Shown one piece after another: positions 14,395 through 39,651 of a stretch of 64,000 bases of DNA (position 1 is the stretch's first letter; every line of letters begins with the position of its first letter). The translations under genes were made by a program, and so were the position numbers. The stretch lies in NCBI GenBank assembly GCA_001643675.2, contig LSRY02000013.1, forward strand, positions 1,488,001 through 1,552,000, given 5' to 3'. Source of the stretch: Monocercomonoides exilis PA203 (taxonomy: Eukaryota > Protista > Preaxostyla). The notes under the pieces were generated by a model that worked only from the letters and a program-made list of their open reading frames with translations, ran no database searches and was not told where the DNA came from.

Positions 14395-15584
14395 ATAGAT
14401 CGTAAAGCCATCATATTTGCTTTTTCTTTCAACACGTCTTCTCTTCCTTCGTCTTCAGAACTTTCAAAGGTTTTAGCCACCGCAGAATTCAGAAGATTAA
14501 ATTCAAAAGTAGAAAAAATTAATTTTCTTCTTTCAAGAAAAGATATTACACGCAAAAGCATTATTTCATCTGGCTTAGTTTCTTCTTCAGCTCTATATCG
14601 ACATATCTCTTCTTTAAATCAGGGAAGAGATCCCCAACACAATGGCAGACCGAATTTGTTCAACAAAGATGAACAATAAGAAATAGAAGACTGAACTAAA
14701 TCTCTTTTTCTTTCAACGAATAAAATTACATTCAAAGACATCATTAAAATAGTTTGGTTTTTGTTTAAAAATATGAATTAACTTTTTTGATGTTGTATCT
14801 TCAGGCTGAACACGTGCTGCAAAGAAAAAACCGAAACAAGGATGACAACAGCGAATTGGCAGAAATTAATGAAAAATGGGCAAGACGATACATAAAAAGA
14901 AGCAATGCCTTGCAAATGGTAAAACCAAAATCCATTGATGTGAAAAGGTTGCTTGCATCTTCAACGGAAAACATTTCAGCGTGGTTTTCATTGCTGGGGG
15001 ACACAATAAGAACGAACAAAATTTGCGCTGATCTGATATTAAATATAGACGAAACAGGAGTCAGTTTGTGTCTATCTGATAACAATTTCATAATCAAACG
15101 ATCAGATCAAGAAGACCCAATGTTGCACTCCCAACAACATCAGCCCAACGCAACATTGGTTTTCGGAGTTATTGCAGATGGATCTTCTATTAATCCAGTG
15201 ATGATTTGGCCCTCAAAAACTGTACCAAAAGATCTTGCAGGATTGAAATATCATCGACTAGAAATAGTGGCCAACGGAAGCGGGTGGATGTCAAAAAATG
15301 ACTTTGAAGAAATCATGATGAAAAACATTTTACCAATAGTTAACAAAAAAAGAATTGAACTTCATGGATCGGAAGCATCGGCGCTTATTATAATGGATGG
15401 GCATTCATCTAGGCTTTGCTGGACTGTTATCACATGGTGTCGTGAACATTCAATCGAAATTATTATTCTTCCTTCGCACACCACACACTTGACACAACCG
15501 CTTGATCGCTATGTGTTTGTGCAATTCAAAAAAAGACTGTATTCATCTTTTCAGCCTCCAACCGAAAACGGAATATCGTCATAT
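14395..15584 (+). pseudogene. pogo/CENP-B-type DDE transposase, 5' part
   Basis: Motifs ILNIDETG, NGSGWM, LIIMDGHSSR, LPSHTTHLTQPLD. Upstream HTH-like exon (ALYRH..GRPNLF) carries TAA/TGA stops; intron ~14752-14804; frame broken at the ATAT insertion site 15581-15584. Confidence 0.9.
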
Positions 15585-16276
15585 GGGTGATTTTTTTTGA
15601 TATCATAAAAAAAGATCAAAAATCCAAAAAAAAATAAAATTATGGGCAGTTGTGATCAATCAATTTTTTTGGAAAGGATTAATTGTTTTTTGAAAATATT
15701 CCAAAATATCAACAAAAGATCAATTTGCATTATTTTTTTGTCAAATTATATTTTTTTTGAACATTATTGAATGATTCACTTATTCCCAACAAAAATAGAA
15801 CCTAAAAAAATTATTTTTCAGGAATATTGTTTTTCAAATTTTTTCATCACTAAATGTTTTTTGAACTATGTTTATTAATGAAATAAACATGACATTATTT
15901 ATTTATTGATTTATTTTTTCTTCGTTCAGAGATATATATTTTTTAAGTTAAAAAATGTTTATTCATTAAAAATCAATTTTTCTTTCATATTAGTACTCTT
16001 TGAAGGAAATATTATTTTTGAAAACAACCAATAACCTAAAAATTGATGTTAATAAAGAAAAAAATAAATAATAAACAATTATTCACAGAGTAGAATTAAT
16101 TTTTCATTTTGATTTATCAATTTTTTCAAAAAAGAGTTATAAAAAAAAATTTCAAACAATGATTTGTTATGATGATATGAAAAAAACAAAAAAGAAAAAT
16201 AATAAATCGAAAAAACAAAATTTTTTTAATTGAGAAAATACTCAAAAATAAAATCAAAAAAAAAAAATGAAAAGAA

Positions 16277-18322
16277 TTATGATTTTTCTATTTTTTTGAA
16301 AAAACAAATAGAAGGATGAAAATTTTCTGAAGCGAGATGATTCCAATAATCATTCCATTTTTCAGGAATAATTTCTGAAACAACATGATCATTACACTCA
16401 ATAAACTTTGAAATGGAACTAGGTTTAGAAACATCTTCTTTCACAATGGCCAAAAAATGCCCTTGCTTATAAAGAATACTTGAATGAATAACACATCCAA
16501 CAAATTCATAAACAACAACATCATCTACAGAACAAGAAGATAAGAATGAATCTTCAGAGGAAACCGTTGGATCAAATATTCTTAAATCCTCAGGCCCTAA
16601 CCCTGAATTAACAAAATGAATAGAAAGAGGAGGAGCTGTTACAGTGAAAAAATCACCAACGTTGAACAAAATACTTAACACTTTTGGAAAATACAAAAAA
16701 CGAACATATTTCAAAAATTGTCTATCTTTGTGACATGATACGCATTCTCCTTCTCTCTTCTCAACAAAAAAAGAATTACAAGTTAATAAATCTTGAAGAC
16801 CAGAAACAACATCTGATCCTCTAATTGTGACAAAAAACTGATCATCCCTTTTTGAAATAGAGTAATCATTACAATGAACACACATTAAAACATTTTGTGA
16901 AATGATAGAAAACATATCGTTTATTTCATTACAATTTTTGGAAAGAACTTTGAGAAGTCTTTCAAAAACAACAGACAGTTCTTTTGGCTGATTCTTTCCT
17001 CCAAGATAAATGTCGTAAAATTTATTAATCTGACCTCCATCCCATACATTAAAATTAAACGAAGAGATTCGAAGAAGATGAAACAGCTGCATGAATGTTT
17101 TTTGCATACTGTTCATTTTTGAAATGTCTATAAATTTAACATCAAGAGAAGCCATGCATTGACAAATGGCAGAAAGAGAGCACACACTGCCATTGTTTTT
17201 CAATCCTCTTTGTGAAGAAAGAAGCATGACAACGCAGGATCTTGAATTTGCTTTTGAAGATAATGAAGAAAAAGATGATGATAAAGCATATTGCTTTTTT
17301 GTTTGTTTTGTAATTACTGAAGAAAAAGTCGAATGTTTTGTGTATTTCTTTGCTTCTTTTGTATTTATTTGAAATGGAGAATTAGCTTTAAAATAAATAC
17401 AAAATTTATCGAAATGATGTGAATTTGTGGATGAAATTTTTTCTTCCTTTTCTGTATTGATGTTTGTGAAGTTTGAAAAAGAAGTCTGTTGCTGTTGCTG
17501 CGGTTGAAGAAGAGATTGAGGTTGATTTTGATTTTCAGGTTGAGGTTGATTTTGAGGTTGAGTCTGAAAAAGTGATTGCGCAGAAGACATAAGCATAGTC
17601 TGTTGTTGTTGTGGCTGCTGCTGCTGTTGTTGTTGTGGCTGCTGCTGCTGTTGTTGTTGTGGCTGCTGCTGCTGTTGTTGTTGTTGCAGTTGAGGAAGAG
17701 AAGATTGCTGCCCTGCACCGACTTGCTCCTGAGGCTTCCCAGTCATCTGCAGCTGATTCTGTTGTTGCGCTGACTGCGGGACTTGTGTGCGAGGCATGGG
17801 GATATTTGGCTGCAGCTGGGGCTGTGGCAGAGAAGCACCGCCCATCTGAGGATTGAGCTGGGTGCTGCCTGGAAGAGATGGATGCCCTTGAGACTGCTGC
17901 TGCTGCTGCTGAAGAGAAGATTGTGTCTGTGCTTTTTGTGAGGAGTTAACGAGAGGTAAAAAAAGAGCAGAATTTGCTAAATGTTGCACATCACTGACTT
18001 TTTGAATAACAGTCGCTTGTTGATAAACATGTTGTTATTATATTTATGTAAAAATATTAATTGTTGTTTTGAAAAATTAAAAAACAAAAATTAAAAATTA
18101 AAATAAACATAAAAAAGCAAATTAAAAAATATACAAACGTAAACACGATTTGATAAAATCGTTGAATAGCTGCGATCCGAAAGAGTCTTCAAGCATTAAA
18201 GCTCGAAGAATGTGCAAAGCTCTTTCATATGGCATTTTTTGAAATATGCCAGAAATATGAGCTACTTCACGTTTTATTACTTTTCTGTCGAAACTATAAT
18301 GCACTTTGGAAGTGCTAAACAT
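16277..18322 (-). CDS. Ubiquitin-specific protease (peptidase C19/USP family) with poly-Q N-terminal region, 2 exons
   Basis: Exon 1 18322-18139; intron 18138-18016 (GTTTGT..CAAG); exon 2 18015-16277 in frame. Cys box GLKNNGSVCSLSAICQC, two CxxC, His box QGHFLAIVK..CNDHVVSEI. Confidence 0.82.
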
Positions 18323-19357
18323 GAAAAATTATATTAAAAAAATATTTGTAAGAACAATTATAATGGTAAATTCAATCTTTTCAGAAAAAAAAACACATTA
18401 AATAAATTAAAACAACAGTTATTTAATAAACATTCCATTTCTTCAAAAATTATATTTTTAACAAAACGACAAATAAAATCGCTTGCATTGCTTTGTTATT
18501 TCAGCTGATATTCTGTTATAAAATAAACATACGTTTTGTGCTTCCGAAAAGAAAATAAAAGAAGAAGATTGGAACTGAATTTGACGAAAGTTGAATGAAA
18601 TAAAAATGGCAATTTTTTGTTGTTTATCTAAGAAGAGAAAAAAGAAGAAGAGGGGAAGAGGGGAAGATGAGGAGGAATAAGAAGAAGATGGTTGAAGTTG
18701 AGGTTGGGCAGACTGCAACAGGGGTGATGGAGATGGCGATGACTGAGAAGGAGAAGAAGAAGGAGAGGATGAAGGAGAGGGTGAATGTGAAGGTGAAGGA
18801 GATACAGAAGGAGAAGGTTGTTTGACAGTTTCATGAAGTGGTGATTGTGCTTGAGTGGAATTGTTTCCTCTGCTCAGTTGAGATGAAGAGATGTATGAGA
18901 AGCTCTGGCTTGTCTGCAAGGGATGCTTAGCAGCTGCTGCCTCCTTGGCAATTTGAGAAGAAGCAGAAGAAGCAGCAGAGTGAGTGATGGCAGACGATGA
19001 TTGAGACTTCATGGAAACACGAGGAGGGACACGGGGACGAGATGAAGGTGAAGAAGAGGAGTTTGAATGGAGATGGAGGAAGTGGTGGTGCTGTGGAAGA
19101 AGAAGAGGAAGAGGAAGAAATGTTTGGTGCAGTTGGGGTTGAATTGGAAGGAGATTGAAGTAATTGTGATGTGTGAGATGACTGAGACTGAGAAAGAGGT
19201 GAAAATGTGGTTAGATGTGATGAATGCGCAGAAGGAGTAGCAGCAGAAGAAGAAGAAAGAGAAGAAGAAAGAGAAGAAGAAAGAGAAGAAGAAAGAGAAG
19301 AAGAAAGAGAAGAAGAAAGAGAAGAAGAAGAAGAAGACTTTGATAAAGAAGAAGAAT

Positions 19358-20400
19358 TCAATTCGATTTCTTCATCCATTCTGATTGTTTTCGATTGCAA
19401 TCACCATCATTTTGTGTTCTTATTCCCTTTTCTGCCTCTTCCTTTCCATCAGCACATTTTTCTTCCTCTTCATCTGGACGAACAATTTTGCTTATTATTG
19501 GGTGTCTGGCTCCGAGGAAGCACTCAGGAACATCCCATCTCTTCCCCTGTGCATATCGGATCACTCTTTTGCCGCTTTCTTCCTCCGAAATTCCGTTCAG
19601 TGCACAGAAAACACGCCATTTGTAGTACTCGTTCCCTTCTCCACCTTCACGCAGGAAACTGAACAACGGGAACTGCTTCTTCTCTTCCCGCATCTTTGTT
19701 TCAAACCCTTTTCCTTTCACCACAACATACATCGCCATCTTTTCAATCACATGTTCCAAATCAACATTTTCAAGAGGAGCTGTAGGAAAAATAGCGTTCT
19801 TGTTCTGATTCAATGAAAAGATCCCTTCTTTCATTGTGTGATTATGGTTGTCTTCCTTTTCATCCTTTTCCTCATTTTTGACTTTGTTCATTTTCTTCTT
19901 TTTTCTTGCTGAGTTGTTACTATGGTGATACAATGGAATAGTCTTTTTCGCATATCCAATATGCATACAGCACTGTTTTTCTATTTCTTGTTTGCCTTTT
20001 TCAATCACCTTTTCCTTCTCTTCACCTTCCCCTATCTCTTCCTTTTCGTTTTCCTTATATCCTTTTATCTCCTTCATCTCCTTCAGTGCTGCCTTTACTG
20101 TCAGCTTTGCACAGACTGCCTCCTCTGTCGTGAAGAACGCCACAAACGCATATCGCTTCTTCTGGTTCACTGCCACATAATCCGGCTGCCCAAGCTCCCC
20201 AAACAGCTGCCGCACATCCCGCTCTCCTGTGCCAGCGGGGAAGTTGCGGATCCACAGCGTGCTCTGCGCTTACCCCGCTTCCTACTCCGCCTCAACCACA
20301 GCCGTAGGGAACACCACTGAACGCAGCACTGCCTCCGTCTCGCTGATCCGCCCGCAGCTGCACAGAAGAGAGAACCATCCGATCGCAAAGCTGAACGTGT
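19358..20400 (-). pseudogene. Captured RRM + SURP (U2SURP/SR140-like splicing factor) fragment
   Basis: STLWIRNFP..RQLFGELG..RYAFVAF (RNP2/RNP1) and IEKMAMYVVVKGKGFE..PLFSFL..YYKWRVF (SURP); in-frame TAG/TAA just upstream. Confidence 0.7.
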
Positions 20401-22496
20401 TGACGGAGTCTGGCTCTGACGTCAGTACACTCGAAGACGAGCTCTGTTCGGTCTCTGAACTACCGGTTGCGCTTTTTGACAGATTATCGCTGGATACAGA
20501 GGCTGCGCATGAAGAGGATTCCTCAAAGCAAGAAGAAGAAGATGATGATGATGACAATGATGAAGATGATAATGAAGATGACAGTGTTGATGAGGAAGAA
20601 GTTGTTGCTAAATTAACAGTTGAAAGTGGATTAAGCAGAGAAGATGCCAAATTGGTTGATGACGACTGCTGCTGTGGGTTGATTGCTTCAGCTTCCATTT
20701 CGTCTCCACTGATGTTCTGATCATTCGTTTTCATGTTTGCTCCCTCAACTTCTTCTGTCTTGTTCTCTTCCTCTCTGTTTTCTTGTTCTTCCATCTTTCT
20801 GTCCAGCTTCACCGACGCCACACGCGCATGCGAGGCAACAGAAGAAATGAACTTCTCCACTTTCAGACTCTCTCTTTTCCGCAGCAGCTCTACTATGTAG
20901 TTCAGCTGCAGCAGCATCGCTCCTTCTCCGCATTCAGATCTACTGAATCCGAAATCCGGCGCTTCAGCTCCGCATTCGCCTCGTTCAGCTTCTCAATCTT
21001 GCTTCGGAATGCAGGCATCTGCTCTTCATGCTCCTTCGTCCCTTCGATCGTCGCACGCACTGTCGTGTCTTTGTCTTCCAGCAATTTTTCCAGCTCTTCT
21101 TTCTCCCTTTTCAGCTCAGCATCCTGCGCCTCTTTCTCCTGCAACATCACCCTCTGCTGCGCTGCCAGTTCTGTCGTCTCCTTCATCCGCTGTGCTGTCT
21201 CAACGGCATCTTTGTCTCTCGCTTCACTCAACTGCGCCTCTCTTTCTTACGCTTTCAGCTTCAATTCTTCTGCCTGCTCTGCTTTTTCTCTAAGCTCCTC
21301 CACTTCTTTCTCCACCTTCTGCTTCGCCATCAGCCATTCCACTTGCTCCTCCGACTGGCTCGACATAAGCGACGTTGCTTGCTCTTCCAGTTCTGTTTTG
21401 ATCTGCTCGAAGCGCTTGATATCTGCCTTCGCTTCAGCAGCCTGCGCCTGCAGCGACTCCTGCTTCACCAGCACCTCTGCCAGCGCCCTCTCAAGATCTG
21501 CTATGTGCTCATCGCATTCCTTCAGCTGCAGAATGAGAGACGCATTTTCTGCAGCCAGGCGGTGGATCTGGTCGACAAGGGCGCTGTTGCCGCTCTGCTG
21601 CTGGAACAGCACAGGCAGGCTGGGCAGCGACAGCGTCTGAGCTGCAGCCAAACTTGGCGAAGCGGAGGGAGTTTGAAGTGTTGTGGGGTGAGAAGCGCTC
21701 TGAGGCATGTTCGTTCTCACTGTGTTATTTGCAGTGAATGTCCGGAGTGAATCGTATCCTCCTCCGCCAAGTGGCTCAGCATCCAGCTGCTTCCCCTTCT
21801 CCTCTGCAAATGGCACCCCAGCGAAAGGCTCCTGGGCATTCGTGCTTTGGCTTCTGGGTGACGCTGCAATGTTCGCCTCCGCCATCGCCGACGTCAGCTC
21901 TTCTTTGATCCCTTCAGCGCGGTTCTTTTCTTTCTCCAGATACGAAACACGCGACCGGAAAAAGAAGTTGCGTGGTGCCTGCCTCTCTTTCCTCTGCTCT
22001 GCTATCTTCCACCGCAAGCATACCTCGTTCCTCTCTTTGTGTGCGGAATGCCACGCAAAGAACACCCAATGCACCAGCCGGATGTCCGCCAGCCGCTGCT
22101 AAAGCGCCACAATTTGCATGTTGTGCGTTTTTCTATCCTTTCGCTCCTGAATGCTCCTCCTCCACTGGCAGAACAGAGACTTAACTCTTTTCAACTTCCA
22201 CATCTCGGCTGCCCTGTTCTCCTTCTGCTGCTGTTCGAGAAATGCGCCCCGCATAACACTCCAGCTGCTGGACATTCGGCGCCTCCAGATCAATTCTTCT
22301 GCTTTGCTCAGCAATTTCTCCTTCTCATTGAATTCTCTGTGATGCCGCTTCCACTCCTCATTACCATCGCTTTCACTTTGTAGCTTCTCATTGCAATCTT
22401 CGTGTTCATTAAAAGAAATGCAAACCGTTTTTTCCTGTCTCTTTCATCATCCATCGCTTCTTTCAACTCGTCCAGCTCTTCCTCTTTCTCATTCAT
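20282..22496 (-). pseudogene. Captured coiled-coil protein fragment with F..W repeats (Sfi1/POC5-like centrin-binding style)
   Basis: One frame continues through stops at ~22100 and ~21248 and a frameshift near 20915; SLFCQWRR and VFFAWHS motifs; long heptad region. Confidence 0.5.
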
Positions 22497-22578
22497 TTCT
22501 TCTTCTTTCTCTTTTTTCTCTCAACAAACCAACAAGCAAACAAAAAAAAAGAAATACCCATCATTCTATTACTTTCTC

Positions 22579-23486
22579 TCAAACAGTGGCGAAGCCAATT
22601 TTTATCACCTTTATGCCCTCCAAAGACAAATATTGTGGATCCTTCTTCATTAACATTATCTTCTTATGCTTCTTCTTCTTCTTCCTCCTCCTCCTCCTCC
22701 TCTTTTCTTCACATACTCTCCCCCGATCAGCAATCCCTCTTCCTTCTCTTCCACTGACTTCTTCTTCTTCTCGTCCTTCTTCTTCTTTTCCTTTTTCTTC
22801 CTCTTTTTCATTATCCTTCTTTTCACACTGCCCCAGCAGCACCCACAGCATGTCCATCGCATAACACACCACACTCCGATGCCTCCCTCTCTTCAGAATC
22901 TGCGCCACTGCCTCAACACACCCTGCCTCCACAACCACCCCCGCCGCCTCCTTCCCCAGCAGCCCCACGTTCCTCAGTTCCCTCAGCGCGTGGCACTTGG
23001 CGATGTGGCAGAGGGCGAAGACACACCTCGGCCGGAGGAGGGTGCGTGCCTGGGAGGAGGTGCCGGCGCTGATGTTGCAGGCGAGGAGCGCTGCCTAGTG
23101 GTGCAGACAGGACGAGGAGGAGGACAGGTGGGAGGCGAAGACGTCGAAAAAAGAGGGCTGCAGCAGAAGACCCTGGATGTCTTCGTCGCTGCCGCACGAG
23201 AAGTTCACAAAGAAGCGGAACGCCATCACTCGCAGAACAGACACAGAATCACTTTGAATGAAGGGGATGATCATTTCATTTGAAATGTCATTCATATTAT
23301 AATTAATATTTGTAGAATATGTAAATGAAAGTTCAAAAAGAATATAATCAAATTGATCAAATTAATAGAAAGAAAAATAGATAAGGCAAACCTCATCAAT
23401 TCCGCAACCAGCCCAAAGAGCACAGGATCAATGTAGAATTTGTTATTATTCGAATTCTCGCGATGTTGGTGAGTACTTGCATACAA
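22579..23486 (-). pseudogene. Captured armadillo-repeat (importin-alpha-like) fragment
   Basis: FFVNFSCGSDEDIQ, *AALLACNISAG, VVVEAGCVEAVAQIL; in-frame TAG at ~23095; intron-like AT-rich tract 23295-23380. Confidence 0.6.
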
Positions 23487-24365
23487 TACTCGATGACTGC
23501 CTTTTCTGTGGGCAGCTCATCGCTCTTCGTTCCTTCATTCTCTATCTACTGCTCTCTTTTTCAAATCCTTTCTTCTTCACTTCTTTTGGATTCTTCTTTT
23601 TCTTCTTCCTTGATTTTCTCTTCTCTTCTCATCTTTCATTCTTTTTATTCTTCTTCTCTTTTTCCTTCATCCAATCTCATATTATCCTCTTCAGCTTCAT
23701 TTTCTTCTTCTATTCATACACCATACAGCCCTCCTTCCATATTATTTCCTCTTCTTTCTTCATCCAACTTCCTCTTCCCTCTCTTCCCTCTCTTCCTCCC
23801 TCTTTCCATCTTCTCCTTAGTATCCTCTTCACCACTCTTCTCATCCACATTTCCCTCAACACTTCTTTCACAAACATGGCTATGCTGAAGAAGAGCTGGC
23901 CAGGCTGAGAAGAAAGCATCAGAGCTCCCAGAAGCTGAAGGAGATGAGAGGTGGTGGCAATGGATGGGAATGACGAGAAGAAGGAATTGCTTGAAAGATA
24001 GGTGGTGGAGAAGGAGAAGAAGAAGGAAGAGGAAGGAGAAAGCAGCATCGTTTCGATCATTCAACGAATAAGTGCATTCGGGGAAGATAAAAGCTCAGGC
24101 AAAGATGATGGAAAAGAAGATTATTTGTGTTTGCTTGTCGAAAGAGATGAATGTTGCGGAGCAGAAGGAATTTGCGAAGAAGAAAGAAAGATAAGGAAAC
24201 GAAGGATGTCATAATTGTAGGTGTAATAACAATTATGATAATTAAGAGGTTTAAAATGATGAATGCTTTTTTTCCAATTTTGTGGTGGAAATGAAGAACA
24301 GTATGCTTGAAAACAACGAGGAAGAAGAAGCATAAAAGAAGACATGAATCACATTTGAATTTTGC

Positions 24366-24580
24366 TTTCAAAAACAAAGTTCCTTTCCTGAAATATCAAA
24401 TTTTTAAAATTTACCAAAAACCCATTTCGAATTTTCATTTTTTCGTTGATCTGGAATTTGCAGAATTGATTATTTTTTAGTTCTTAATGGAATAAATGAT
24501 ATAAAGAAGAGATAAATATACGCAAAAACGATTTCTGCAAATTCCCGTGTAATTAAAATCTTTCATTGATCAATAAGATC
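24366..24580. promoter_or_regulatory. Internal site L: inverted GGAATTTGCAGAA pair spaced 67 bp plus flanking boxes
   Basis: GGAATTTGCAGAA 24453-24465 and TTCTGCAAATTCC 24533-24545; inverted counterpart at 29837-30053. Function unknown. Confidence 0.6.
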
Positions 24581-25162
24581 AAATCGGACAATTTTCAGAA
24601 TGAATATTATCAGAAACATTTTTTAAAAAAAAACAATCTTAATTTGTAAATTTCAATCGATGCAATAAATTTTCATTGTTTATTATTTGTCACTATTGAA
24701 AAAAAAATTTTTTTGCAAAAACTTATCATTTACAAAAAAAAAATTATTATTAAAAAAATCCTATTTTGATTTTAGTCATTTTTTTAAATAAACACATAAA
24801 TAACAATTATGTTCATTGAATTTTGATTGAGACAGTAATACTGATTTTTTGTTTTATAAATGATATTTTTAACAATTTTTTAAAAATTTTTTATTTTGTC
24901 GTTTGATATTTTTATTCTCAAATGATGTGGAAAACGAAATAAAATTCATGTCAGTTTTGACTTGTCAGCAAATTTTTATAGGATAATTTTGAATAATAAA
25001 AATTCATTTTTGGAAGCTCTTTGAATATTTTATTTGTCAATTTTTCTTTGAATAAACACAAAACCAAAAAAAAAAAATTAAAAAAAAGCGTTGTAAATTC
25101 AAACAATAACATATAAATTTCTAATATCATCAAACCATTATTAAAACACTTTCAATATAAAA

Positions 25163-27519: not shown

Positions 27520-27551
<32 letters not shown>

Positions 27552-28915
27552 TCATCACACCACCACATCAAACTTCTTCCATTCCTCAACATTCTTCATC
27601 AATCACATCTTCATATGGATTGGAAGCACTGAAAGAAAGAAGAAAGAAAACGGGCATCTTTTCTCCCAATGAAAAGAGATTAATCTTCAAGCCCAAGACA
27701 AAATTATGGAGAGAGTTTTCAGAAGAAACGAATATCAAAGTTTCTCTTTCCCACTTCTACAAACTCACCACCAACTTTTCCAAAGCGAAAAGACGAACTG
27801 ACCTTTGTGGAATGTGCGAGAAGCTCAACTATCTGGAAAACAAATTAAAGTCATCGCAAAACAAAAATGGACTATCTCCTGCAGAATTTCAGACTCTCAA
27901 ACTTCTTCGTCAACATCGTCTTGTTGCAGAAATGCAACGAAAACATTATCAATCAACTGTTGATAATCTTAAAGAAGGTGAGGCAGTCTTCGTCTTTGAC
28001 TTCAAAGAAAAATGGAAACTCCCTATCAGAAAAAATCAACTTCAACAGGAATTCTTCAACTATCAACAAGTTTCTCAATTCACAATCATCTCACTTCAAA
28101 AAATAAACAATCAACAAATAAAAAGAACTTTCAACTTCTTCTCCGACTGCCTCTCAAATGATCACAGATTTGTCATTGAGTGTCTGGAATCTGTGATCAA
28201 AAGACACTTCTTCTCAGACACTCACACCTTTAAGTTCTTCTGCGATTCTGGACCACACAACCGAAATCGCTTCCTTCTTCACTTCATCCTCTCAAAACAA
28301 TCAAAACTTCTTAAAAAGAAAAACACTCAACTCAACTTCTTCGCTGAGCACCACGGAAAAAATATCTGTGATAGTGAATTTGGTGCGTTAGTGAATGCAA
28401 TCGACAACTATCTTTCGACTGAACATATCACCACACTTCATGACTTGATCAACTTCTTCGAAAACAATATGAACACTTCGACATCAGCTTCTTCAACTTC
28501 ACAATCGAACAACTTCTCAACATCATCATCAAACTCTTCACCATCTTCGACATCTGTCAATAACTTTGAGCATGAGAGGTATTTTGAAGAATATGTACCA
28601 TCTCAACAAATCTCATGGCCGTCATTGACAGTCCCTCACATGAAAGACTATTTGTATTTTGAGCGCAAAGGCTCATTTGTCTGTGCTTCAGCTGTTGGAT
28701 ATCTTCCTCAACGCTCTCTGGTTGCCCTCGAATCTTCGACAATGAAAGAAAAGGTTCAACGAACAAGAAAGTCATTTCACTCTGATATCACATCATCTAA
28801 CTCTTCTCTTCTTTCTCAATCTTCTCAAGATCTTCTTTCAAGGAGATTTGAGCTTCTTCTTGACTCTTCTTCTATTAATGAATCTCAAAATTGTTCTTTT
28901 GGTGTCCCCTATTAA
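25163..28915 (+). CDS. Sola2-like DDD transposase with embedded USP (peptidase C19) domain, 3 exons, ~1200 aa
   Basis: Exons 25163-25328, 25429-25659 and 25710-28915 join in frame (GTTTG..AG introns). USP: GLLNLGNTCYLASLLQC, NGHYIAIVK, CNDENVS. Transposase: VSLSHFYKL..RRTDLCGMCE, FVFDFKE (D 27998), FFCDSGPHNRN (D 28244), NFFAEHHGKNICDSEFG (D 28370). Confidence 0.88.
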
Positions 28916-28919
28916 GAAA

Positions 28920-29065
28920 CTAGTTGTTGTGTATGCTTAGCTGGCACTCTATCGGAAGGGTGCTGGACATGACTGTTCGTATTAGATATTGCAGCCTTCG
29001 GGCTGCTTTATCCGGACCTGGATACGACGAACAGCCTCCCAGGTGCACAACAGTTAGAATCCGAT
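28920..29065 (+). ncRNA. Candidate structured RNA element (multi-stem, possible pseudoknot), family unknown
   Basis: Five nested helices with G-U pairs that work on the + strand, a cUUCGg tetraloop, and a loop complementary to a downstream 6-mer; GC-rich island in AT-rich DNA. Confidence 0.65.
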
Positions 29066-29836
29066 TGTTTTCTTACTGTTTCTGTCCCGATAATGTCCCT
29101 ATAATTAATTTGGTTATTGTCCCGCATATATTTGTATTTATCGAGATTCATTAATAGAGAGAGTTGTGAGGGAATTCATTGATCTTTGAGTGAGGTTTTT
29201 GGAAGGGAGAGTTATTGAGAGTGTGAAGTGATGTTTTATCATTGTGTCTGTCTTTTTTCTTTGTTGGATTTGATCTTTTTGAGTCAAAGTTAGAGAAATA
29301 TCAGAAAGGGAAGAGTGGATTAAAAACAAAAGAAAAACAGTCAAGTTTGTTTTTGGACTTAAAATATTTGTAATCTTTTTTGTTTGGTATTGCCATTGAT
29401 TCCATGAATCAGCTGTTTTGGTGCGACCTTTTCTTTTTCCTTTCATTGTTCAAAATTGTTGACATTTAGTTAACATTTGGTGACTGTTTTGATGATTATG
29501 TGATGGAATTATGTTTTTTTGAAAGATATTGAATCTGATTAGAAAATTTCTGACTGTTTTCAATTTTTTTAATGATCAATATCATGAAGTACTTTTTGTT
29601 TATTTATGTCATTCTGATTGGTGAACGATTGTTAATTTTTAACGTATTTTTTTCATTTCATTGATATTTTTTCCATTTCGATTTTGACTCAGATTCGAAA
29701 ATATTAAATTTTTTTATCTTGAATTCAACTTCAGTTTTTTCCATATTACTTAAATTAACGTTAAAAGCAATTAGTATTTATTTGAAAGAAATGAATTTTT
29801 GCAAATAGATCAACAAACAATTAACTGTTTCACAAA

Positions 29837-30053
29837 AGATCTCAATGATCATAAAAAAATTTTCATTACTTGGGAATTTGCAGAAATCGTTATTAACCTA
29901 ATGAAACACTTCAACAATATATAAATATTATCTTGATATATCAAAAAAGCATTTCTGCAAATTCCTGATCAACAAAAAAAAATGAAATTTGAAATGGGAT
30001 TTCAATGAAGAAAAAGGTTTGATATTTCGTGTTGACACTTTATTTTCGAAATT
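29837..30053. promoter_or_regulatory. Internal site R: inverted counterpart of site L
   Basis: GGAATTTGCAGAA 29873-29885, TTCTGCAAATTCC 29953-29965 (67-bp spacer), GAAATGGG 29991-29998, TTTGATATTTC 30018-30028. Confidence 0.6.
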
Positions 30054-30392
30054 TTTCTTAATCTGCCAAAGACTCTATTATTAAATTTTGAATATTTCTT
30101 TTGCTTTTCTTTTTAGAAATTCTGTGGTTCTTTCTCAACTGAAGCCATAGTTGAATTTTGTTGTTTTCCGTTTCTTATGGAGAGAAATCAAATTATTCTT
30201 TGTTTGTCCTTCAAGGCATTTTATTTATTTATTTATTTTTTAATTTTAATTTTATTTCCAAGTCTTTTATTTTCTTCTTCTTCTGCTTCGTCAAATGCTG
30301 GTTTTCCGGCTTCCTCATGTCCGATTTCAAGTGATCAAACCAAGAATCCCTCTTCATCATCATTTTCTTCTTCTTCTGTTTCACTGCTGAGC

Positions 30393-33300
30393 ATGCCATC
30401 AACTGCATTCGGAAGAGCACTCAAACGAAGCGGAGGGAGAAAAGCGCTTGCTGCCTTCAAGCGGACAGTTCGTCTGAAGACATACACAAACTCAAGAATT
30501 GCTCCACCAGAGTTCAAATCAGAAGTGCTAGGGCTGACAAATAAGATGGGAGGAAGTGGAAATAACATCATTAATAATAATAATAGCAGTAAGAGGATGA
30601 AGCTATTTCGTGTGGTGATGGAACAAGTGTCGCTGGCTATTCCAAGAGGAAGACCACCGAAGATGCGGAAGAAGAAGATGATGACAGCGATGGGGCTGAT
30701 TCAGCAGGTGCAGAAGAGCGAAGGAGGAGCAAGTGCAAATGTGACTGTACAGTATTCGAGGTGTTTGGAGTCAGCTGCCGCGGCATTGGAGAGTTAGAGG
30801 AAGCTTGGAAACAAAGAGAAAGTGAAAGAAGATGAGAATGGAAAAAGGAAAAAGGAGAAAGATAAGGAAAGAATTATTTCAGTGTTTGATGAGCTTCCTT
30901 CAGATGAATAGGAGTTTTGAAGGCAAAGAGGAGCAAAGTGCAGAGGGAAAGCGGGAGTGAAAGGGGAAAAAAAGCGAAAGGAAAAGCATTCCAATCAAAG
31001 ACAAGTCCGATGATGGGTTCATAAGCTGTCCTAAGTGAGCTTCTTTCGAAAAAGTTGGAGCTGCTTTGTGTGGCAGATGGCAGCATCACATTTGACTCTT
31101 CTGAATCTGACACTCGTGAGACAAGTGGAAGAAGCAGAAGTGACATTGAGTGGAATGGCTATGACGAGGAAGTGGATGATAAGGAGGAGGAAGAAGAAGA
31201 AGAAGACGTGGAGTTAGACAGGATTCTTAGTGCAAAGATATCCATGACAAGCACACGGGCAAATCGGCAGACACCGAAAAAGATCAGATTTGTTTTTGAA
31301 TATGGCACCTCTACCACATTCAACTCAGCAAAAATAAGAGAAAACAGCTCAATCGAAGCAACATTTATAACAACTGAGATGAAGGACAGGGAGAAAAGAG
31401 ATTCACTTACGAAGTTGATGAAGAACACACTGAAGCAGACACATGGAAGGATCATTCCAACAATCAATCCAGCCGATTTTAGACTTTATGCAAATCTCGT
31501 GCAGGAAGAGGAAAGCAAGGCAAAGAAACAAAAAAGAAAGATGTGGCTAAGAGGGAAAGGGAAGAATGAGTATTATTTGAAGCGGAATGAAGAGAGGAGA
31601 GAGAGAATGAACGGAGCTGGTGCAGCTGACACTGAAGAAGCAAAAGAATACTATGAAGATAACGACAATTACGATAGCGATGATAGATACGTTAGCGGTG
31701 GTGAAGACAGTTTGGATATAACACGATTTGCTGATACATCAAATGCCGATGAAACAGAAAAGACAACAGAAAGAGAAAAAGACCCAAAAACACTCCTTGC
31801 ACTGCGCTTCTCTCACAAACAGCAAAAAGCTCTTTCATCGATATCCCAAAAGAGCTATCACAAGAAGTCGAGTTTTGTTTTCTCACCCACCTCAACCATC
31901 TCCAGTGGAGAGCTTTGTCCGATGCCTCTTCAGATTTCTTTTCCTTCAGCTAAGTTCACAAAGAAAAATGGAGAGAAAGAAGAATACAAGAACACAATTG
32001 GCTCAGACGGAGGCAGAGAAGCGCTGCAGAGCCCGCGCAGAAGACACAGCAATTACAGTTTATTAGCTGTTTCTGTGTCACGAAGACATCTTGTCCTGTC
32101 TGCCATCAGAGCAGCACTCGGCAGAGAATTGCAGGCGCATCTCAGAGCAGCTGCGGAAAACGGGTTTGCGATAGCTTCTTCTTCTGCAAGTGTGTCTTGT
32201 TAGACGGCATGCCAATGCAAATGGAGAAGATAGAGGAGGAGGAGTAGATGACCTTGGGAACAATTCTGTGTTTGGGGAGAAAAACAAACAGAAGACAGGG
32301 CCGAAGAAGCTGTTTGTGAGGTTGATGAACAGATTGGGTAGGATGAAGGCGCTTCTTTGCTTCACTCTCTCGGAAAGGCGCTATCCCATCTTTTCAACCA
32401 GCTCGGGTCACCTCAGCTTCCAAAGCCCATTACGATTCCATCATCTTATGCTGGGGCAACAGGGGGAATATTGGCGAATGATGCGAACAAGTTTCTGGCT
32501 CTGCTGTGTGGAACGAGGCTGTTCAGCTTGGGGGGAGAAGATGCAGTGAGAGATGCGCAACTGGTGGAGAACATGAGAAAGCAGATGAATGTATGGAAAG
32601 GAGAAGGAAGTGCAGCTGTGGAAGGAGGGGACAGTGCAAATGGTCGAAAAAGCTGTTCTGTGAAGAAAGGGGAATCTTCGGAACTGTTCCTGCTGTACAG
32701 AAAAAGATCAATAGGAAGAATGACGACAATAACTTCTCTTTGGATGCAATGGAAAGAGAGTTATATACAATCAATGCGAATATTCTGCTTGACCCACTTT
32801 TGTTTGCTTCGTCTGTCTTTTTCAAAAACCAACAACTTCTGCTGTCTGCCTCAGAAAATACAATTTTAGTTCCTCCTCAAAGAACGGCATATGTCCCATC
32901 CATCGGAGAAATTCTACTCGAACTGACAAATCCATCTTTTCAGTTTGCTCCGCCGCTCATTGAACATCCACAGAAAAAAGAGAAGCATTCAATTCTGCCT
33001 TCTTCTCTCAAGTTTTCATGAGCGCTTCTTGTCAACATGTGCCCTCTCCCTCTTTCTCATCCACTCACTCCAATCGTCCGCACTCTGCTTTCAAAGATGC
33101 TTTCAGTATCTTTCACTTCATCTTCCATGTTCTCCATCCCTTCTTTATTCACCTCCTTCGTCACTTCTATTTCCATTTCTCAGTCCATACCATCCTTCAG
33201 CGCAACGCCTTCCATCATCTCGTTCTCCATGCAACCCCTCGACCCTTCTGCCGCGTAGTCCAATCTCCAGCTGCTTCGTCTGCTGGCAACGCGGGCTGCA

Positions 33301-33627
33301 CTCACCGCTATTGTCACCGCTCTTCGCAAGCTGATGGTGAAGAAGGACTTGCTCCATTTAATATTAGCCATATTCGAGACACACCATGTCCAGAAACCTT
33401 CTTCTTCTCCTTCGATGTTCATTTCTGCCTCTCTCATCCAGCGATTGGAGGTTGTTGGCGCTGCATTCGCACAAGCCACACCTTCCGCTTTTGCTTCTGT
33501 CCAGCAAACATCTGAGTCTCAGTCAACTTCATTGGAATCGAATATAACAACAGATGCACTGGACCTGAGTGGATCTTCAAATTCTGCTGCTGATGAAGCT
33601 AATACAACTTCTGTTGGCATGCGATAA
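30393..33627 (+). pseudogene. Captured host gene fragment(s), unknown product
   Basis: GC-richer coding-like sequence that continues across TAG/TGA stops and frameshifts (ORFs at 30177, 31055, 32357, 32506, 33334). Confidence 0.55.
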
Positions 33628-34160
33628 ATGCATAAGGAACAGCAAGTGGAAGAAGAGGAGAACTTCCCTATCAGATAAAGAAAGACTAATTCTCAGCAAT
33701 TCTTCCACATCAGCTTCAGATAAGCGTAACCTCCTCTCAGTTTCCTCTCTTTTTGCTTTCGCAATCTCCTTCTCCTTCTCCCTCTTCTCCGTCATTCACA
33801 TCAATAAATTCTCCATCCTCAGTTTCCCTCCCTTTTCCTTCGACTCATTCTCTTCCACTTCAGAGTGGAAAACGAACATCTCCTTCTTTTTCTTTTCTCC
33901 CATCCATCAGGAACAATTCCTAAGAATTCGACGATGAGAAGTCAACTTTCTCGAATTCTCTCATTTGTTAAAGGATGCTCTATCATCTTCACCTGCAACT
34001 GTCCTACTTGCTCTGCTTATCTCACAGCTACAATCTAATTCATAATCTTCTTCTTCTTCTTCTTCTTCACCTCCTCCTCCTCCTTCTTCTTCAATAACAG
34101 AAATAACACCTTTATCATCATCTTCTTCTTCTTCTTCTCCTTTCAATAGAAGGTGATTCA

Positions 34161-36450
34161 ATGAAAGAATTTGGCACAACCGAAGACTCAGAAGCAGCTC
34201 TTCTGCAGCGTCTGGCATTGAACGAACTTGATTCCCGTCTCTCAGACGCAGAGCGAAGGTGGATTTATCACTCCAACTTATCCTATTCACTTGGGTGTTC
34301 TGCACTTCCTATTGTGTCGCCATCTTCTCTTCTCACACCAGGCACGCAAATTCACTCGTTTCCTGCGCCTTCTGTCTCCTTCTCTCTATTTCCCCCGCCG
34401 CCTCCCCCGCGCGTGTGCGAAAGATGATCCTGTCAGAAAGAGAAAGATTAAAACAGTTTGTGACCCTCCACGTGCGCAGCCGCCTCTTCCACATCTGCAC
34501 ATTCTGTGGGAACAGCAACAGCCACCTCAGCTCTGCTACCACAGACGTCCTCGCCTCTTTCTTCAGCGGCGGAGACAGCATCGACGACCCTGATATCACA
34601 GGAGCCAAATGGGCAAAAGAATGCCTGCGCATCAGTTCCCCCACTGTCCAGCACGCTGCTTTGCTCGCCCTCAACCGCCTGGCTGAAACTCACCCGCCCT
34701 CAAAGTACTTCGACTTGTGGTACCCGATCTTTCCTGAGCTACTGAATGCAGAGCAGATGAAGAGGTACTGCGAGGTCGACCGCTCCCTCTCCGCCTCGCT
34801 TGTCGCGCTGTTTGCATCGTCTGCTGTCAGCTTTGAGCACATTTCAGTTGCAATGCCTCGCATGCTCCTTTTATTGGGTATCCCAAACACAGCTCTTCAG
34901 ACAACCGTCCTGCAGATCCTGTTGGAGGCAACGAAGAGGGGAGAAAGCGAGCGTCTGTCGCTGGATTCCCTCAGAGCCATCGAGTGGGCGTCTGCAGGGC
35001 TGAGATCAGTTCCAGATGAGCTTATCTTTGGAGCCCTGCAGTTCTTTGTGGTGATGCTGGGCACGATACACAACCGGCCTGACGCTGACAGCGCCATCAC
35101 TTCTATCACACGAAGGAGGGAATATAATGGAGAGCGGTTTGGCTGCCCCTGCGAAATGCAGGCAGTGAAGATGTGCTCGTTCACGTTCGAGTCGATGCTG
35201 AAGCTGATCAACCCGCTCACGCACGCGCCACGCACAGTCTCTTTGGCTGTTGCTTGCATTTCGGCCTTTGCTGAACTGGGATTTGGAGCAGAAGATGTGA
35301 TGGAGGACAGGATTGCGCTGCAGCTGTATCAGAAACCGGAGGAAAGGGCGTCGTTTTTCTTTTCTCCGGCTTCTTCTCCTGGTGGGAGCGGGAGTGGGAG
35401 CGGAAGAATAGCATCAGCAGCAAATGCGACGGAGGCAATGTATTCTTCTTCTTCCTCTCCCTTTCACTTTCCCTCTTCATATTCCTCTTCCGACCAAAAA
35501 CTTCACTTCGACTCCGGCACCTGCTTCATCCGCCTTCTCATATCCCTCTTTTTCACCAAGTTCCCTTCCCTCACCTCTCTCTCTTCCCTCTCCTCCACCA
35601 GCCCCAACGCCTACCTCCGCCTCTACCCAACTCCTCCTCTCGTCCACGCCGCCCGCGCCTTAACCCACTTTGCCAAGCAAGACAGACGCATAGCACATTC
35701 TTTGTCTTCTATCAGAATCAGTTTCCCCTCCTGGCCTTCCACACATATCTTGCTCTCTTCTGTTGTTCCGCAGCTGCTGGAGACGATGGAGGGAATAAAC
35801 TTGGCGAATGTGCTGAGTTTTGTGGCGGTTGTGTTTGAGATTAGCAGGGCTTTTAGAAAGCAGCTGGTGGAGATGGATATCTTTGGGATCGTGCTGAAGA
35901 TGACAAGAATGGGAGGGGAGGCGTATGCGAAGAAGAGGAAAGAGGAAGGAGAAGAAGAAGGAAGTAACAAAGAAGTGGATGATAATAATAAAGAAGGTGA
36001 TATAAGAGAAACTTCCATAGATTCAGATAGAAAGCACGTATTCAGCCCAAGTCCGCTATCTCCTTCGAATTTTGCTCAAAACAATGCAACTTCAGAAAAT
36101 AATCCCTTCATCGCCCCGATCGCTTCCCCAACCCCTCCAGAACTAATTCCTGCAGACATCAAAAGCAGCTTAAATAGAAAGCATATAACACCGCTGGATT
36201 CAGAAGAAGCTGAAAATGAAGAGAATGAAGAAGATAATGACAACGATAATGATGAATGAAGTTCAAACGAAAGAGAAGAAAGAGACGATATTGTAATTGA
36301 AAATGAGGGAGAAAGAGAAAGAAGTTTAGAAGAAGAAGAAGTTGAGAATATCAGCAGACAAAGCAGAAGATGAGAAAGAAGAGAGGTAAGAAGAGCGATC
36401 ACTGCCGCATCGCGGAATTCTCGTCGGAGTGTGCAGACAGCTAGCCGTTC
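34161..36450 (+). pseudogene. Captured HEAT/ARM-like helical protein fragment
   Basis: 666-aa open stretch (VQHAALLALNRLAE, LQTTVLQILLE, LVEMDIFGIVLKM) with a frameshift near 34400 and a TGA at 36257 followed by more coding-like sequence. Confidence 0.55.
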
Positions 36451-37069
36451 AGTCGATGCTTTCTCAACAGCCTCAGCTGCTGCTGGCACACTCAATGCCT
36501 CATTCTCTGCTTCTTCTTCTTCTTCTTCTTCTTCTTCTTCTTCTTCAATTTATTCTTCTTCTTCTTCCTTTTCTTCTTCTTCACCTTCTTCTTCACCTTC
36601 TTCTTCTTCTTCTCCTTCTTTCTCCTTCTTGGATATTTCTTTTTCTACGCTTCTTCTTCTTCTTCTTCTTCTTCTTCACATTCTTCTTTGCCTTCTTCTT
36701 CTTCTTCTTCTTCTTCCTCTTCCTCTTTCTATTTCACTTCTACTACTACGATCACTTTTTCTTCTTTTCCTAATCGTATTTCTTCATTTTTTGCATCTTC
36801 ATTTGGGAAAATAGCAGAAATAAAAAAGAATGGAATTTATGAAGAAATCAACTTATTAAAAAAACGAAAAGAAGATGATTAGTGAATGAAGAGAATGAAG
36901 ATAAAGAGAAGAAGAATTTGATTTGTCAATAAATGATGATTGGAAATTTGAAAGAAAAAAATGAAGGTATTGATAAATGTTAAAGTTAAAAAGAAATGGA
37001 GAGAAGTTTGAAGAGAAGACGTCGACGAACAGTAACAGTACGCGACAACGAAGCAAGAAGAGTTCGTTG

Positions 37070-38785
37070 AATGTCAGAACCATTCCGTCCGTTTCTTCTT
37101 TTTCATATGCTCTTTGGAGCATTGCAACAATCATCATGGAAGGGAATTGATTGGCGAAGCAGAGGAAAGAATATCCACCGTTTCGTTTCTATGTGAGTAA
37201 ATGAAAGAGCATTCAGGAGCCTTTCCAGGGCTAGGCAATGAGGAGTACACAAAAGTTAGAGCAGTTGCTGTTGTGGAAGGTGGAGGGGAAATTCAGGATG
37301 GAGAGGCTGTCGTTGGTGAGTTGAAAGTGGCCTTCGAGCATGCTTCGACAGAGCTGGCCGAGAAAAATGATAGTAAAGATAAAGCGCATCATGATGAAGG
37401 AGATTTCTGACATTTTTATTCCAGAAAGATAAAGAAGAACTATGCTTTTGCTAACATTGGCGAGGACTGTTATAAAAAGATGTTCAAAAATGCTTATTGA
37501 TTCATCGTCAAGCATAAGCAAAGTTGAAGCAACTTTGAGAACTGAGAGGTTGATGTGGAAAAGATTAAGGGAGTAAGCAGTGAGAGTACAAGAAGCATAA
37601 GGAAAGAGGCGAAAGGGATGAACAGGTGCGTTGGAGAGGTGAGTGGTGTTTTTGCAGGCACAAAGCAGTTTTGAGTTGAGGCAGACATGTTGGTTGGAAG
37701 GAGAAAAAAGGGATAATTCGAAGGAACAATTGAAGCAGAGGTGGCTTAAAGGATGATGCAGCCATTGAGAAACACAACGGAAGCCAACTGATGGTGTTCA
37801 AATGAACAAGATCAAGACTTCTGGAGATAAACCAGAATCGGAATATGGAAAGAGAGATATGGGCTTCGAAAGAGAAGGAGGAGATCCAGAAGATATTGAC
37901 GAGTGTTGTCGATGCAGAGGATTAATGTGCAAGCGGGTGATCTGCTGGCTTTATCGACGAATATCTGTTGGACGCAGTAGAAGAAGAAGAGGATGAGATT
38001 GTGATCGACATCGAAGTTGAGGCCGGGACGGGAGGAGATGGCGTCGCAAAAGGAGGCTTCTGTGACGAGAGAGAGTTGGAAAAAGTGAAGGGAAAAGAGG
38101 AACTCGTTGTTTAGGCTTGGATGCTGCAGCACTGGAGAAAGATGCACTTGCCCGCAAAGGAGTTATTCAAGGCTCAGCGGAGAGCGAGGAAGGAAATGAA
38201 GTTGGCAGATGCGACAGCTTTGTGAGAGCAGTCGAGAAAGATTCAGTCGCTGTTTGTTGAGCAAGTGATGATGCACTGGATGAGGATGCAAATCGATACG
38301 CGCAACTGTTGAACACTCACGCCTCGGCAGCACAGCCTTCAGCACATCTCCTCTCCGCTTTCCCGCTAGAACTGTCCCGTTGCATGACAGCACGATGTTG
38401 GTGATGTTGGCAAAGTCCAAAGCGAAGACATTTCTAATGTCTGTGGCCGCCAACCTCGAGACAGTCTTTCCGGCCAGTGTGTGGGCTGAAAACATCGAGG
38501 TCAGCGACAGTGATCAAAGAAAACGAGACTGAGAGGGATTTGAGTTCAGAGGAAGTGGATGCAGAAACTGACACAATATACATGAAAAGGAGAGGGCGCA
38601 GTTGTTATAAGACACACGCACTTCAACCGCTTCCACAGTTGCATATGAAAAAGGTGTTTGTGGAGTCTGCATATAAAAAGAGCAGCCTGCAAAAGCCGAG
38701 CAACTGAGGAGGTAGTATCAGGATGAAGGATGAAAGACGAGGAAGATGATGAAGGATTGAGAGAGGGGAAAAAGAAAAAGTTCAA
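37070..38785 (-). pseudogene. Captured/decayed gene fragment, unknown product
   Basis: Chain of minus-strand ORF pieces (38495, 38147, 37801, 37688, 37521) separated by stops or frameshifts. Confidence 0.45.
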
Positions 38786-39398
38786 GTGAAGATTTTCGTT
38801 CTGTGGAAGATTTAAAATTGTCTGAATGAGAAAATCTTAAATATCATGTTGTTTCTTTTGTAATTTTTTTCAATAGCTTTGATCAATTAATTTAAATAAC
38901 TAATTTAAAGAATTATTAATTTAAATACAATTATTAACAATGAACAATTGTTTATTCGACAAATATTATGTGCTTCCATCATATTTCTCTATATGCGTTA
39001 ATGAAAATTATTCGTTTTCTATAAATGTTTCAAGATCTTCATAGTCAATTTATAAAATTCTTTGCATTAACATCATAAAACTAGTTTTTTAAATAAAAAA
39101 TAGATTGATTTCATATTGTTATTATTGTTTTCACGTTTAAAATACCAGTGAACATTTGTATCGTTCTGTTTATTGAATTATCGATATTTTCTATTAATTT
39201 TTTATGTTTTCTTCAAATTTTGTAATAAAAACAATTAAAATCAAATTAAAATCAACAAATTAATAATTATAATAATATATTAATGCATATTTTCGCAAAT
39301 TTTTTCTGAAATATTTTCTTATAAACCAAACCCTTAATAAAATAATTTTTTGATCAAACTTCGTAATTTTTTATGATATCATAAAAAATCACCCATAT

Positions 39399-39651
39399 AG
39401 AAAAGCTCTTGTGCCAGCATTGGCAGATGCTGTGAGTGCTGCGTTGGAACCTAGAACTATTAAATAATCGTTCAACACTTGCGGGATTGAGCCATTTGAT
39501 CCGTCAGTTGTTTTAGACCGACTGCCCAATCAGTCTTCAATTGCAAAAATATCTTCAATTAGTTCATCGGCCCGTGCTTCAAATGGAGTCTTTAACATGA
39601 AAGTTTTAACAAGTGATGATTTTGTTCAGGAGAACGAACCAAGTGAAAAAG
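39399..39651 (+). pseudogene. pogo transposase, 3' part
   Basis: RKALVPALADAVSAALEPRTIK*SFNTCGIEPFDP matches the I..SF..CGI.P motif that follows DDE_1 domains; in frame with the 5' part across the TSD. Confidence 0.85.

Follow-up and report, generated by a model that had tools for sequence, protein, structure and literature searches.

The question raised by this locus is whether 23.8 kb of DNA in the metamonad Monocercomonoides exilis PA203 moved as a single unit and, if so, what kind of mobile element it represents. The window, that is, the whole stretch of 64,000 nucleotides that was analysed (positions 1,488,001 to 1,552,000 of the forward strand of contig LSRY02000013.1, assembly GCA_001643675.2), contains a 23,810-bp segment at positions 15585-39394 (window numbering is used throughout) bounded by terminal inverted repeats (TIRs). 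The window consists of AT-rich eukaryotic DNA. A preliminary description had presented this segment as a giant, cargo-carrying transposon resembling Sola2 elements and as a candidate for an undescribed mobile system. Judging from sequence comparisons, we consider it likely that segment 15585-39394 represents a full-length and probably autonomous member of a high-copy family of Sola2 type in M. exilis. The element carries a gene in which a ubiquitin-specific protease (USP) domain is fused to the transposase; this gene lies in a cassette flanked by two arms.

The left TIR (the "A" end; 15585-15612, plus strand) and the right TIR (the "B" end; 39367-39394, minus strand) are each 28 bp long and identical at 27 of 28 positions, with a T/A mismatch at position 13. 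The termini read GGG...CCC, and the count of TIR matches in 100 shuffles was zero. The A end holds the palindrome TGATATCA and a conserved TGATCA at about +69; the same hexamer is conserved at -43 in the B end, where about 400 bp of subterminal sequence are common to most family members. Directly adjoining the two TIRs are copies of the tetranucleotide ATAT (15581-15584 and 39395-39398), forming a 4-bp target-site duplication (TSD). The insertion disrupts a pogo-like (DDE_1) transposase gene: an open reading frame (ORF) in the left flank (14787-15590, with a DDE_1 domain, PF03184, E 7e-12) runs into the left end, the 5' part of the host gene spanning 14787-15584 on the plus strand and its frame resuming at 39399-39467. 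When the flanks are fused around one ATAT, a reading frame of 288 amino acids (aa) is recovered. The left flank matches 22 further places in the genome, and two paralogues of the empty site, on contigs C69 and C17, are uninterrupted and show a single ATAT at the site, with flank identities of 96.5% and 93.3% over 600 bp. Together, the TIRs, the TSD and the empty-site paralogues indicate that the 23,810 bp arrived as one piece with a 4-bp duplication. Thus, as the preliminary description had proposed for both the ends and the joint movement, the 23.8-kb interval inserted as a single unit into an AWWT site (ATAT) within a pogo-like element. About 1 kb past the right end, a 26-nt stretch (40344-40369) is 77% similar to the TIR core; it is probably a chance resemblance or a decayed end.

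The ends recur throughout the genome. A search of 82,301,135 bases in 101 contigs with the TIR pattern (up to two mismatches) gave 396 matches, compared to 0 for a reversed control. Thirty sampled ends fall in two subterminal types, A and B, and 28 of them lie on AWWT (ATAT, 16; ATTT, 8; AATT, 4). Sixteen candidate end pairs were assembled, of which 15 combine one A and one B end. In all 15 the 4-bp flanks are identical, as expected from the proposal that such pairs carry 4-bp TSDs, and element sizes range from 4,458 to 23,810 bp. The sixteenth pair (E11, on C18) was rejected as a single element, having two B ends and unequal flanks (ATGT and ATTT). The family has a single, asymmetric pair of ends, A and B, which share the 28-bp TIR. 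Relatives without transposase, 4.4-12.8 kb in size, are present as well. A parallel search with the transposase domain identified no fewer than 101 copies whose aa identity is 80-100% (101 scored of 477 candidates); by our own count of the table, at least 46 of the scored copies have stop-free frames exceeding 1,050 aa. Among the 48 transposase copies listed for contigs C1-C35, 30 have an exact inward-facing TIR at a distance of 7.8-14.3 kb, exact TIRs occurring only about once per 500 kb. The gene and these TIRs thus keep company; the preliminary description had taken the opposite, copies of the transposase with other termini and TSDs and these TIRs with a different transposase, as the mark of an independent insertion. 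One sister element (E15, on C24) holds a nested Tc1/mariner transposase (HTH_Tnp_Tc3_2 and DDE_3) in its B-end region.

The transposase is encoded by an intact ORF of 1055 aa (25748-28915, plus strand) that needs no intron. A Pfam scan of residues 640-1055 of its product gave no match, the ESM Atlas yielded nothing usable, and a word-indexed protein search matched M. exilis paralogues only, the nearest database proteins being entries named "uncharacterized protein MONOS_..." (92-95% identity). An exhaustive HMMER scan with the transposase, on the other hand, collected 686 relatives. One of them, PPL_04538 of Heterostelium album PN500 (phmmer E 1.7e-15; BLASTP E 4e-23, 28% identity over 271 aa), agrees in the stretches compared (residues 87-122) with the Sola2_PPa-1 protein given in supplement 3 of PMC3627910. 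This agreement connects the M. exilis gene with a Sola2 transposase described in the literature.

The catalytic domain, starting at nt 27677, contains three aspartates conserved almost without exception in the aligned homologues: D751 in 159 of 160, D833 in 155 of 156 and D875 in all 150. The HGK triplet at 869-871 is kept in 149-150 of 150 homologues and is invariant in alignment A1; a CxxC pair lies upstream of the catalytic motifs in the homologue alignment. An AlphaFold model (mean predicted local distance difference test score, pLDDT, 74.7; about 85 or higher in most of the catalytic core, about residues 11-270) puts D751 on strand 1 of the core sheet, D833 where strand 4 ends and D875 in the helix that follows strand 5. 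Superposition of the model by VIA-align gave a Z of 10.6 with the core of the foamy-virus (PFV) integrase (root-mean-square deviation, rmsd, 2.9 Å, 140 residues aligned) and 10.4 with the Mos1 transposase (rmsd 3.5 Å, 182 aligned). According to the model, the transposase domain has an RNase H-like fold with a DDD triad. In the literature, Sola elements are described as having a DDD transposase, TSDs of 4 bp and TIRs of 11-1124 bp and as reaching sizes "over 15 kb"; for Sola2 the TSDs are AWWT/ATAT. The present element shows a homologous transposase, the DDD triad, a 4-bp AT-rich TSD, TIRs and the predicted RNase H-like fold. As for GRG...CYC termini, the family starts with GGG and DFa-2 with GAG, and the PPa-1 consensus starts with TGT (PMC3627910). 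The proposed Sola2-type transposase, with its DDD triad, HGK..CD motif and AWWT TSDs, is thus borne out.

Upstream of the transposase domain, the same protein carries a UCH/USP domain (nt 26528-27361, plus strand; residues 261-538) that matches PF00443 with an E of 5e-13 over profile positions 2-241 of 254. Its NTC(269)Y and GH(509)Y stretches, containing the Cys box and the His box, align with the corresponding boxes of human USP36 (E 4e-7), and the domain is predicted from these boxes to be catalytically competent. In the six full copies compared, both halves of the protein are in frame and free of indels. The ratio of nonsynonymous to synonymous substitutions (dN/dS) is 0.06-0.09 for the transposase domain, whose synonymous divergence is 0.28-0.45, and about 0.2 (0.19-0.43) for the USP domain. 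These ratios indicate that both halves of the fusion are maintained by selection, and no ORF other than the fusion gene is intact in every one of the six autonomous copies. The intact transposase-USP fusion of the preliminary description is therefore real and evolves under purifying selection. All 10 of the non-family homologues scanned, among them the P. pallidum protein and a second lineage from M. exilis at 42% identity, lack the UCH domain, and our literature search found no description of a USP fused to a cut-and-paste transposase.

A second, stand-alone USP gene, USP2, had also been proposed and was confirmed at 16277-17989 on the minus strand. The C-terminal 357 aa of its product match PF00443 (E 1.3e-6). 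USP2 and the fused USP share 25% identity (E 1e-21) and an unusual C-terminal motif. The USP2 gene is part of a module at the left end that recurs in 20 copies or more, many of which contain stop codons. Other elements hold USP paralogues that are more distantly related.

Five nucleotides past the stop codon of the fusion gene begins a hyper-conserved, GC-rich element of 146 nt (28920-29065, plus strand). This interval includes the least diverged 100 bp of the cassette (mean pairwise difference 0.030, compared to 0.035-0.15 in the transposase coding region), far under the synonymous divergence of the adjacent transposase domain. Its first 80 nt have about 115 near-invariant copies in the genome, against 4 control matches, and the copies that were cross-checked sit just 3' of transposase copies. 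The fold z-score is -3.68 for the sense strand and -2.92 for the antisense strand. Some 100 copies were tallied by eye. Variants in the stems, as judged in this way, are mostly single transitions that preserve pairing (G.U to A-U or G-C), and no two-sided compensatory change was seen in the stems. The UUCG loop varies, and two copies have its reverse complement. Rfam returned no match at the gathering threshold, nor any at E<=10 over 28850-29150, and no tRNA was found in the element. Altogether, these data show that the 3' element is clearly under constraint and make it a candidate for a structured RNA in the 3' untranslated region or for a DNA site. The structured-RNA candidate put forward earlier is upheld as regards folding and constraint.

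The fusion gene and the 3' element belong to a cassette (24289-30002, 5.7 kb) that is common to all six transposase-bearing copies. The two arms between cassette and ends are mosaics, their modules being common to differing subsets of copies, and there are end pairs that hold no transposase. On either side the cassette is framed by a palindromic unit of about 165 bp, at 24417-24580 on the left and 29838-30002 on the right. Both hold the same 13-bp inverted pair with 67-nt spacing (24453-24545 and 29873-29965), in agreement with the paired internal sites noticed earlier. In the whole genome the exact internal-site motif is present no more than 15 times, and most of these occurrences can be shown to adjoin or flank transposase copies on the list.

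It is these units that sustain the most serious alternative, in which the 5.6-kb cassette (about 24417-30002) is an independent Sola2 element with long inverted repeats, nested in or recombined into a transposase-less carrier with 28-bp TIRs. The giant element would then not be strictly autonomous. A set of observations weighs in this direction and against our interpretation. Between them, the outer arms of the units make up an inverted repeat of 62 bp (84%), and this inverted similarity reaches outward by another 130 bp or more in copy E01; the arm modules have their junctions at or near the borders of the units, on the left at 24289 or 24418 and on the right at 30002. With long inverted repeats of its own and junctions at its edges, the cassette may once have been, or may still be, a separate mobile unit, that is, a smaller long-inverted-repeat element, and an independent origin of the cassette may to this extent be entertained. 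Furthermore, 2 of the 12 copies with typed ends (E09, at C12:173492-190451, and a copy at C11:772645) hold the cassette in the opposite orientation with respect to these ends, and 18 of the 48 transposase copies have no exact TIR nearby, in a list restricted to exact TIRs. Two more general points belong here: the Sola2 class was set by homology and shared traits in a comparison with Sola2 elements, and the direction in which gene fragments passed between host loci and arms (see below) is read from open-frame lengths and stop-codon counts alone.

Nevertheless, we regard an independent cassette as unlikely. The position of 30 of the 48 copies at 7.8-14.3 kb from an exact outer TIR is unexpected for a freely mobile cassette. 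About 128 bp outside the left unit are common to four copies with differing arms, and no TSD is visible at the units. The association with the outer TIRs, the common flank and the lack of a unit TSD all argue against free mobility of the cassette. Moreover, it is the outer ends that make the 4-bp AWWT TSD typical of Sola2. The ORFs scanned from transposase-less relatives include no other transposase, and the sole other one found, the Tc1/mariner ORF of the autonomous copy E15, is a nested insertion. The inverted cassettes fit recombination between the inverted palindromic units, and the units themselves may be the vestige of an ancestral long-TIR element.

Reading segment 15585-39394 as a single autonomous element leaves the arms to be accounted for. 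Their layering was established by comparing the element with 15 others. The right arm is common to three of the transposase-bearing copies compared; the left arm has no match among the 15 and is present in copies on C68, C82, C40 and C32. Besides USP2, the left arm holds a fragment of a host gene with a Surp module (19358-20215, minus strand; PF01805, E 2e-12), whose DNA match extends over approximately 19246-20600 and which is 92% identical in aa sequence to two loci on C59 (at 169k and 206k), where the open frames measure 997 and 1488 aa. Next to it is a fragment of a large host gene (20530-22512, minus strand), the ORF of which (21247-22074) is 89% identical in aa and 91% in DNA sequence to C64:410547-411380, inside a 2017-aa open frame. 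On the right, module R1 (30272-34089, plus strand; more than 20 copies) includes an old, decayed fragment of a giant host gene (31055-32203; its aa identity is 73% to C38:172309-173337, part of an open frame of 3548 aa), and the R1 ORF has stop codons in nearly all full-length element copies. Module R2 (about 34100-36600, plus strand) represents a recently acquired fragment of another giant host gene: its ORF (34259-36259) is 96% identical in aa sequence to C43:738457-740286, inside a 4056-aa open frame. R2 is found in about eight copies, sister copies carrying 1-bp frameshifts, and is missing from many in which R1 abuts R3. Module R3 (about 36600-39000) recurs in at least nine other copies. 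On this sequence evidence, at least four modules appear to be fragments of large host genes of differing ages (73-96% aa identity). The earlier estimate of about 15 kb of host-gene pieces is supported in part: some 6-7 kb can be traced to donor-like loci, four in number.

All arm segments recur in other copies (for example, on C68, C82, C37 and at C7:1649k). It follows that the present copy inherited its cargo and captured nothing itself, in which respect the earlier idea of a gene-capturing family was overstated. The degree of identity to copy E02 varies along the element: 78.7% in the USP domain, 92.2% in the transposase domain, 82.6% and 88.2% in the R1 ORFs, 97.2% in R2 and 95.6% in R3. 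Such unevenness points to recombination or gene conversion among copies. From match coordinates only, the closest sibling is at C68:~182900-210451 (about 27.5 kb); it has the same left and right arms, a stop codon in the transposase and a cassette interval longer by about 4 kb. Separately, the left-arm stretch 22737-23759 has 74-87% matches on C80, C10 and C14, loci that may represent a separate repeat or gene family.

A further alternative is that the arms encode functional accessory genes of benefit to the element or its host, as in Starships. In its favor, USP2 retains intact Cys and His motifs in the present copy, with long open frames in a few others, the 666-aa frame of R2 is open here and in two other copies, and dN/dS of the cargo ORFs in sister copies, at 0.3-0.6, stays below 1. 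However, every cargo ORF compared has 1-bp frameshifts and stop codons in sister copies, substitutions are spread evenly across codon positions, the pieces are internal segments of host frames of 1,000-4,000 aa, and the fusion gene alone is intact in all six autonomous copies. We thus find a functional cargo very improbable. Finally, false pairs like E11 exist, yet a chance pairing of TIRs from two elements, with the interval never moving as one, deserves practically no credence here, given one A and one B end with identical TSDs and empty sites that join the flanks exactly at a single ATAT.

The remaining features of the window lie outside the element. An open frame of 2590 aa (498-8270) has a C-terminal tyrosine/Ser-Thr kinase domain and probably belongs to the expanded kinase gene family of this genome (cf. 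PMC8767320). A relationship between the R2 fragment and this kinase-type giant ORF was considered and rejected, the comparison showing none. A 1.9-kb polypyrimidine tract (55435-57304, CTT/CTTTTT-like) causes extreme GC and AT skew. A scan for sigma-70 promoters and terminators gave results at about shuffle level; the underlying model is bacterial and not applicable to a eukaryote.

How might such an element work? The fusion protein would bind the 28-bp TIRs and the subterminal TGATCA motifs, and would cut and paste whole elements as well as, in trans, the transposase-less relatives of 4-13 kb. Fragments of host genes would join the element at the borders of the cassette, probably through repair or template switching, with transposition and recombination between copies spreading them afterwards. 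We raise as a possibility, tentatively, that the USP and the 146-nt 3' element are working parts of the transposition machinery. The USP could shield the transposase itself, or remodel chromatin or repair factors that bear ubiquitin: with a deubiquitinase built in, the transposase might escape ubiquitin-dependent turnover, or the target at the excision site might be ubiquitinated chromatin or repair factors. A structured 3' RNA outside Rfam might, in turn, control the mRNA of the transposase. If this is true, the USP and the 3' RNA together could keep a cut-and-paste element of at least 20 kb active in hundreds of copies.

The data document a very successful Sola2 family in a metamonad. With more than 100 transposase copies and elements of up to about 24 kb, the family plausibly makes up a few percent of the 82-Mb genome; the published repeat annotation of the M. 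exilis genome leaves 35% of the assembly unclassified (PMC8767320). For annotators of this genome, it is of use that copies of the family are currently filed as "uncharacterized protein MONOS_...". Furthermore, an in-frame USP-transposase fusion, under purifying selection and present in dozens of copies, offers a direct way to test for a link between ubiquitin signalling and cut-and-paste transposition.

Among known systems, the closest are other Sola2 elements. Sola elements larger than 15 kb, and Sola2 elements of 10-15 kb with interchangeable modules, have been published (PMC10741241, PMC3627910). What is new is therefore the family or variant, not the kind of mobile system, and the suggestion of an undescribed system does not hold. 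The chimeric Sola2-Fanzor elements of dictyostelids (DFa-1/2/3 and PPa-1/4/5; Bao & Jurka 2013, PMC3627910) resemble the M. exilis family in having a homologous DDD transposase, 4-bp AT-rich TSDs (AWWT, ATAT), short TIRs, a large size (10.3-15.3 kb) and a common transposase-bearing region joined to entirely different other regions. The M. exilis elements are larger (17-24 kb) and number in the hundreds, compared to 2-12 copies. Their extra DNA consists of host-gene fragments and USP genes instead of Fanzor, and their transposase is fused to a USP, whereas the P. pallidum protein has no UCH domain.

Pack-MULEs and other Pack-type transposons carry fragments of several unrelated host genes within their TIRs; these are amplified by transposition and are mostly non-functional. 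The M. exilis family likewise has fragments of host genes from several loci between TIRs. It differs in being Sola2 and not Mutator, and in that the fragments ride in transposase-bearing as well as transposase-less elements; while Pack-type elements are non-autonomous, the present copy has an intact 1055-aa transposase gene. This is Pack-like carriage of gene fragments in Sola, for which no prior description in the superfamily was found in the literature searched.

As to the proteases, MULEs with a Ulp1-like protease exist. Helitrons and Helentrons with OTU or VTD deubiquitinase domains have been described (PMC9741609). In these systems, as here, a transposon-borne ubiquitin(-like) cysteine protease is joined to, or lies beside, the transposition enzyme; the M. 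exilis protease differs in being a USP (C19, PF00443) that shares one reading frame with a cut-and-paste transposase of DDD type.

The Starships of fungi are very large cargo carriers that use a tyrosine recombinase and transport functional genes. The likeness lies in the very large size and the carriage of cargo. The M. exilis element, unlike Starships, has a DDD transposase, TIRs, 4-bp TSDs and decaying fragments; domain scans found no tyrosine recombinase in it, the DDD transposase being the only transposition enzyme detected. Since the cargo is frameshifted and close to neutral, the element is Pack-like and not Starship-like. In conclusion, of the autonomous, giant, gene-capturing Sola family once likened to Pack-MULEs or Starships, the large family and its Pack-like fragments stand, and the likeness to Starships is not supported.

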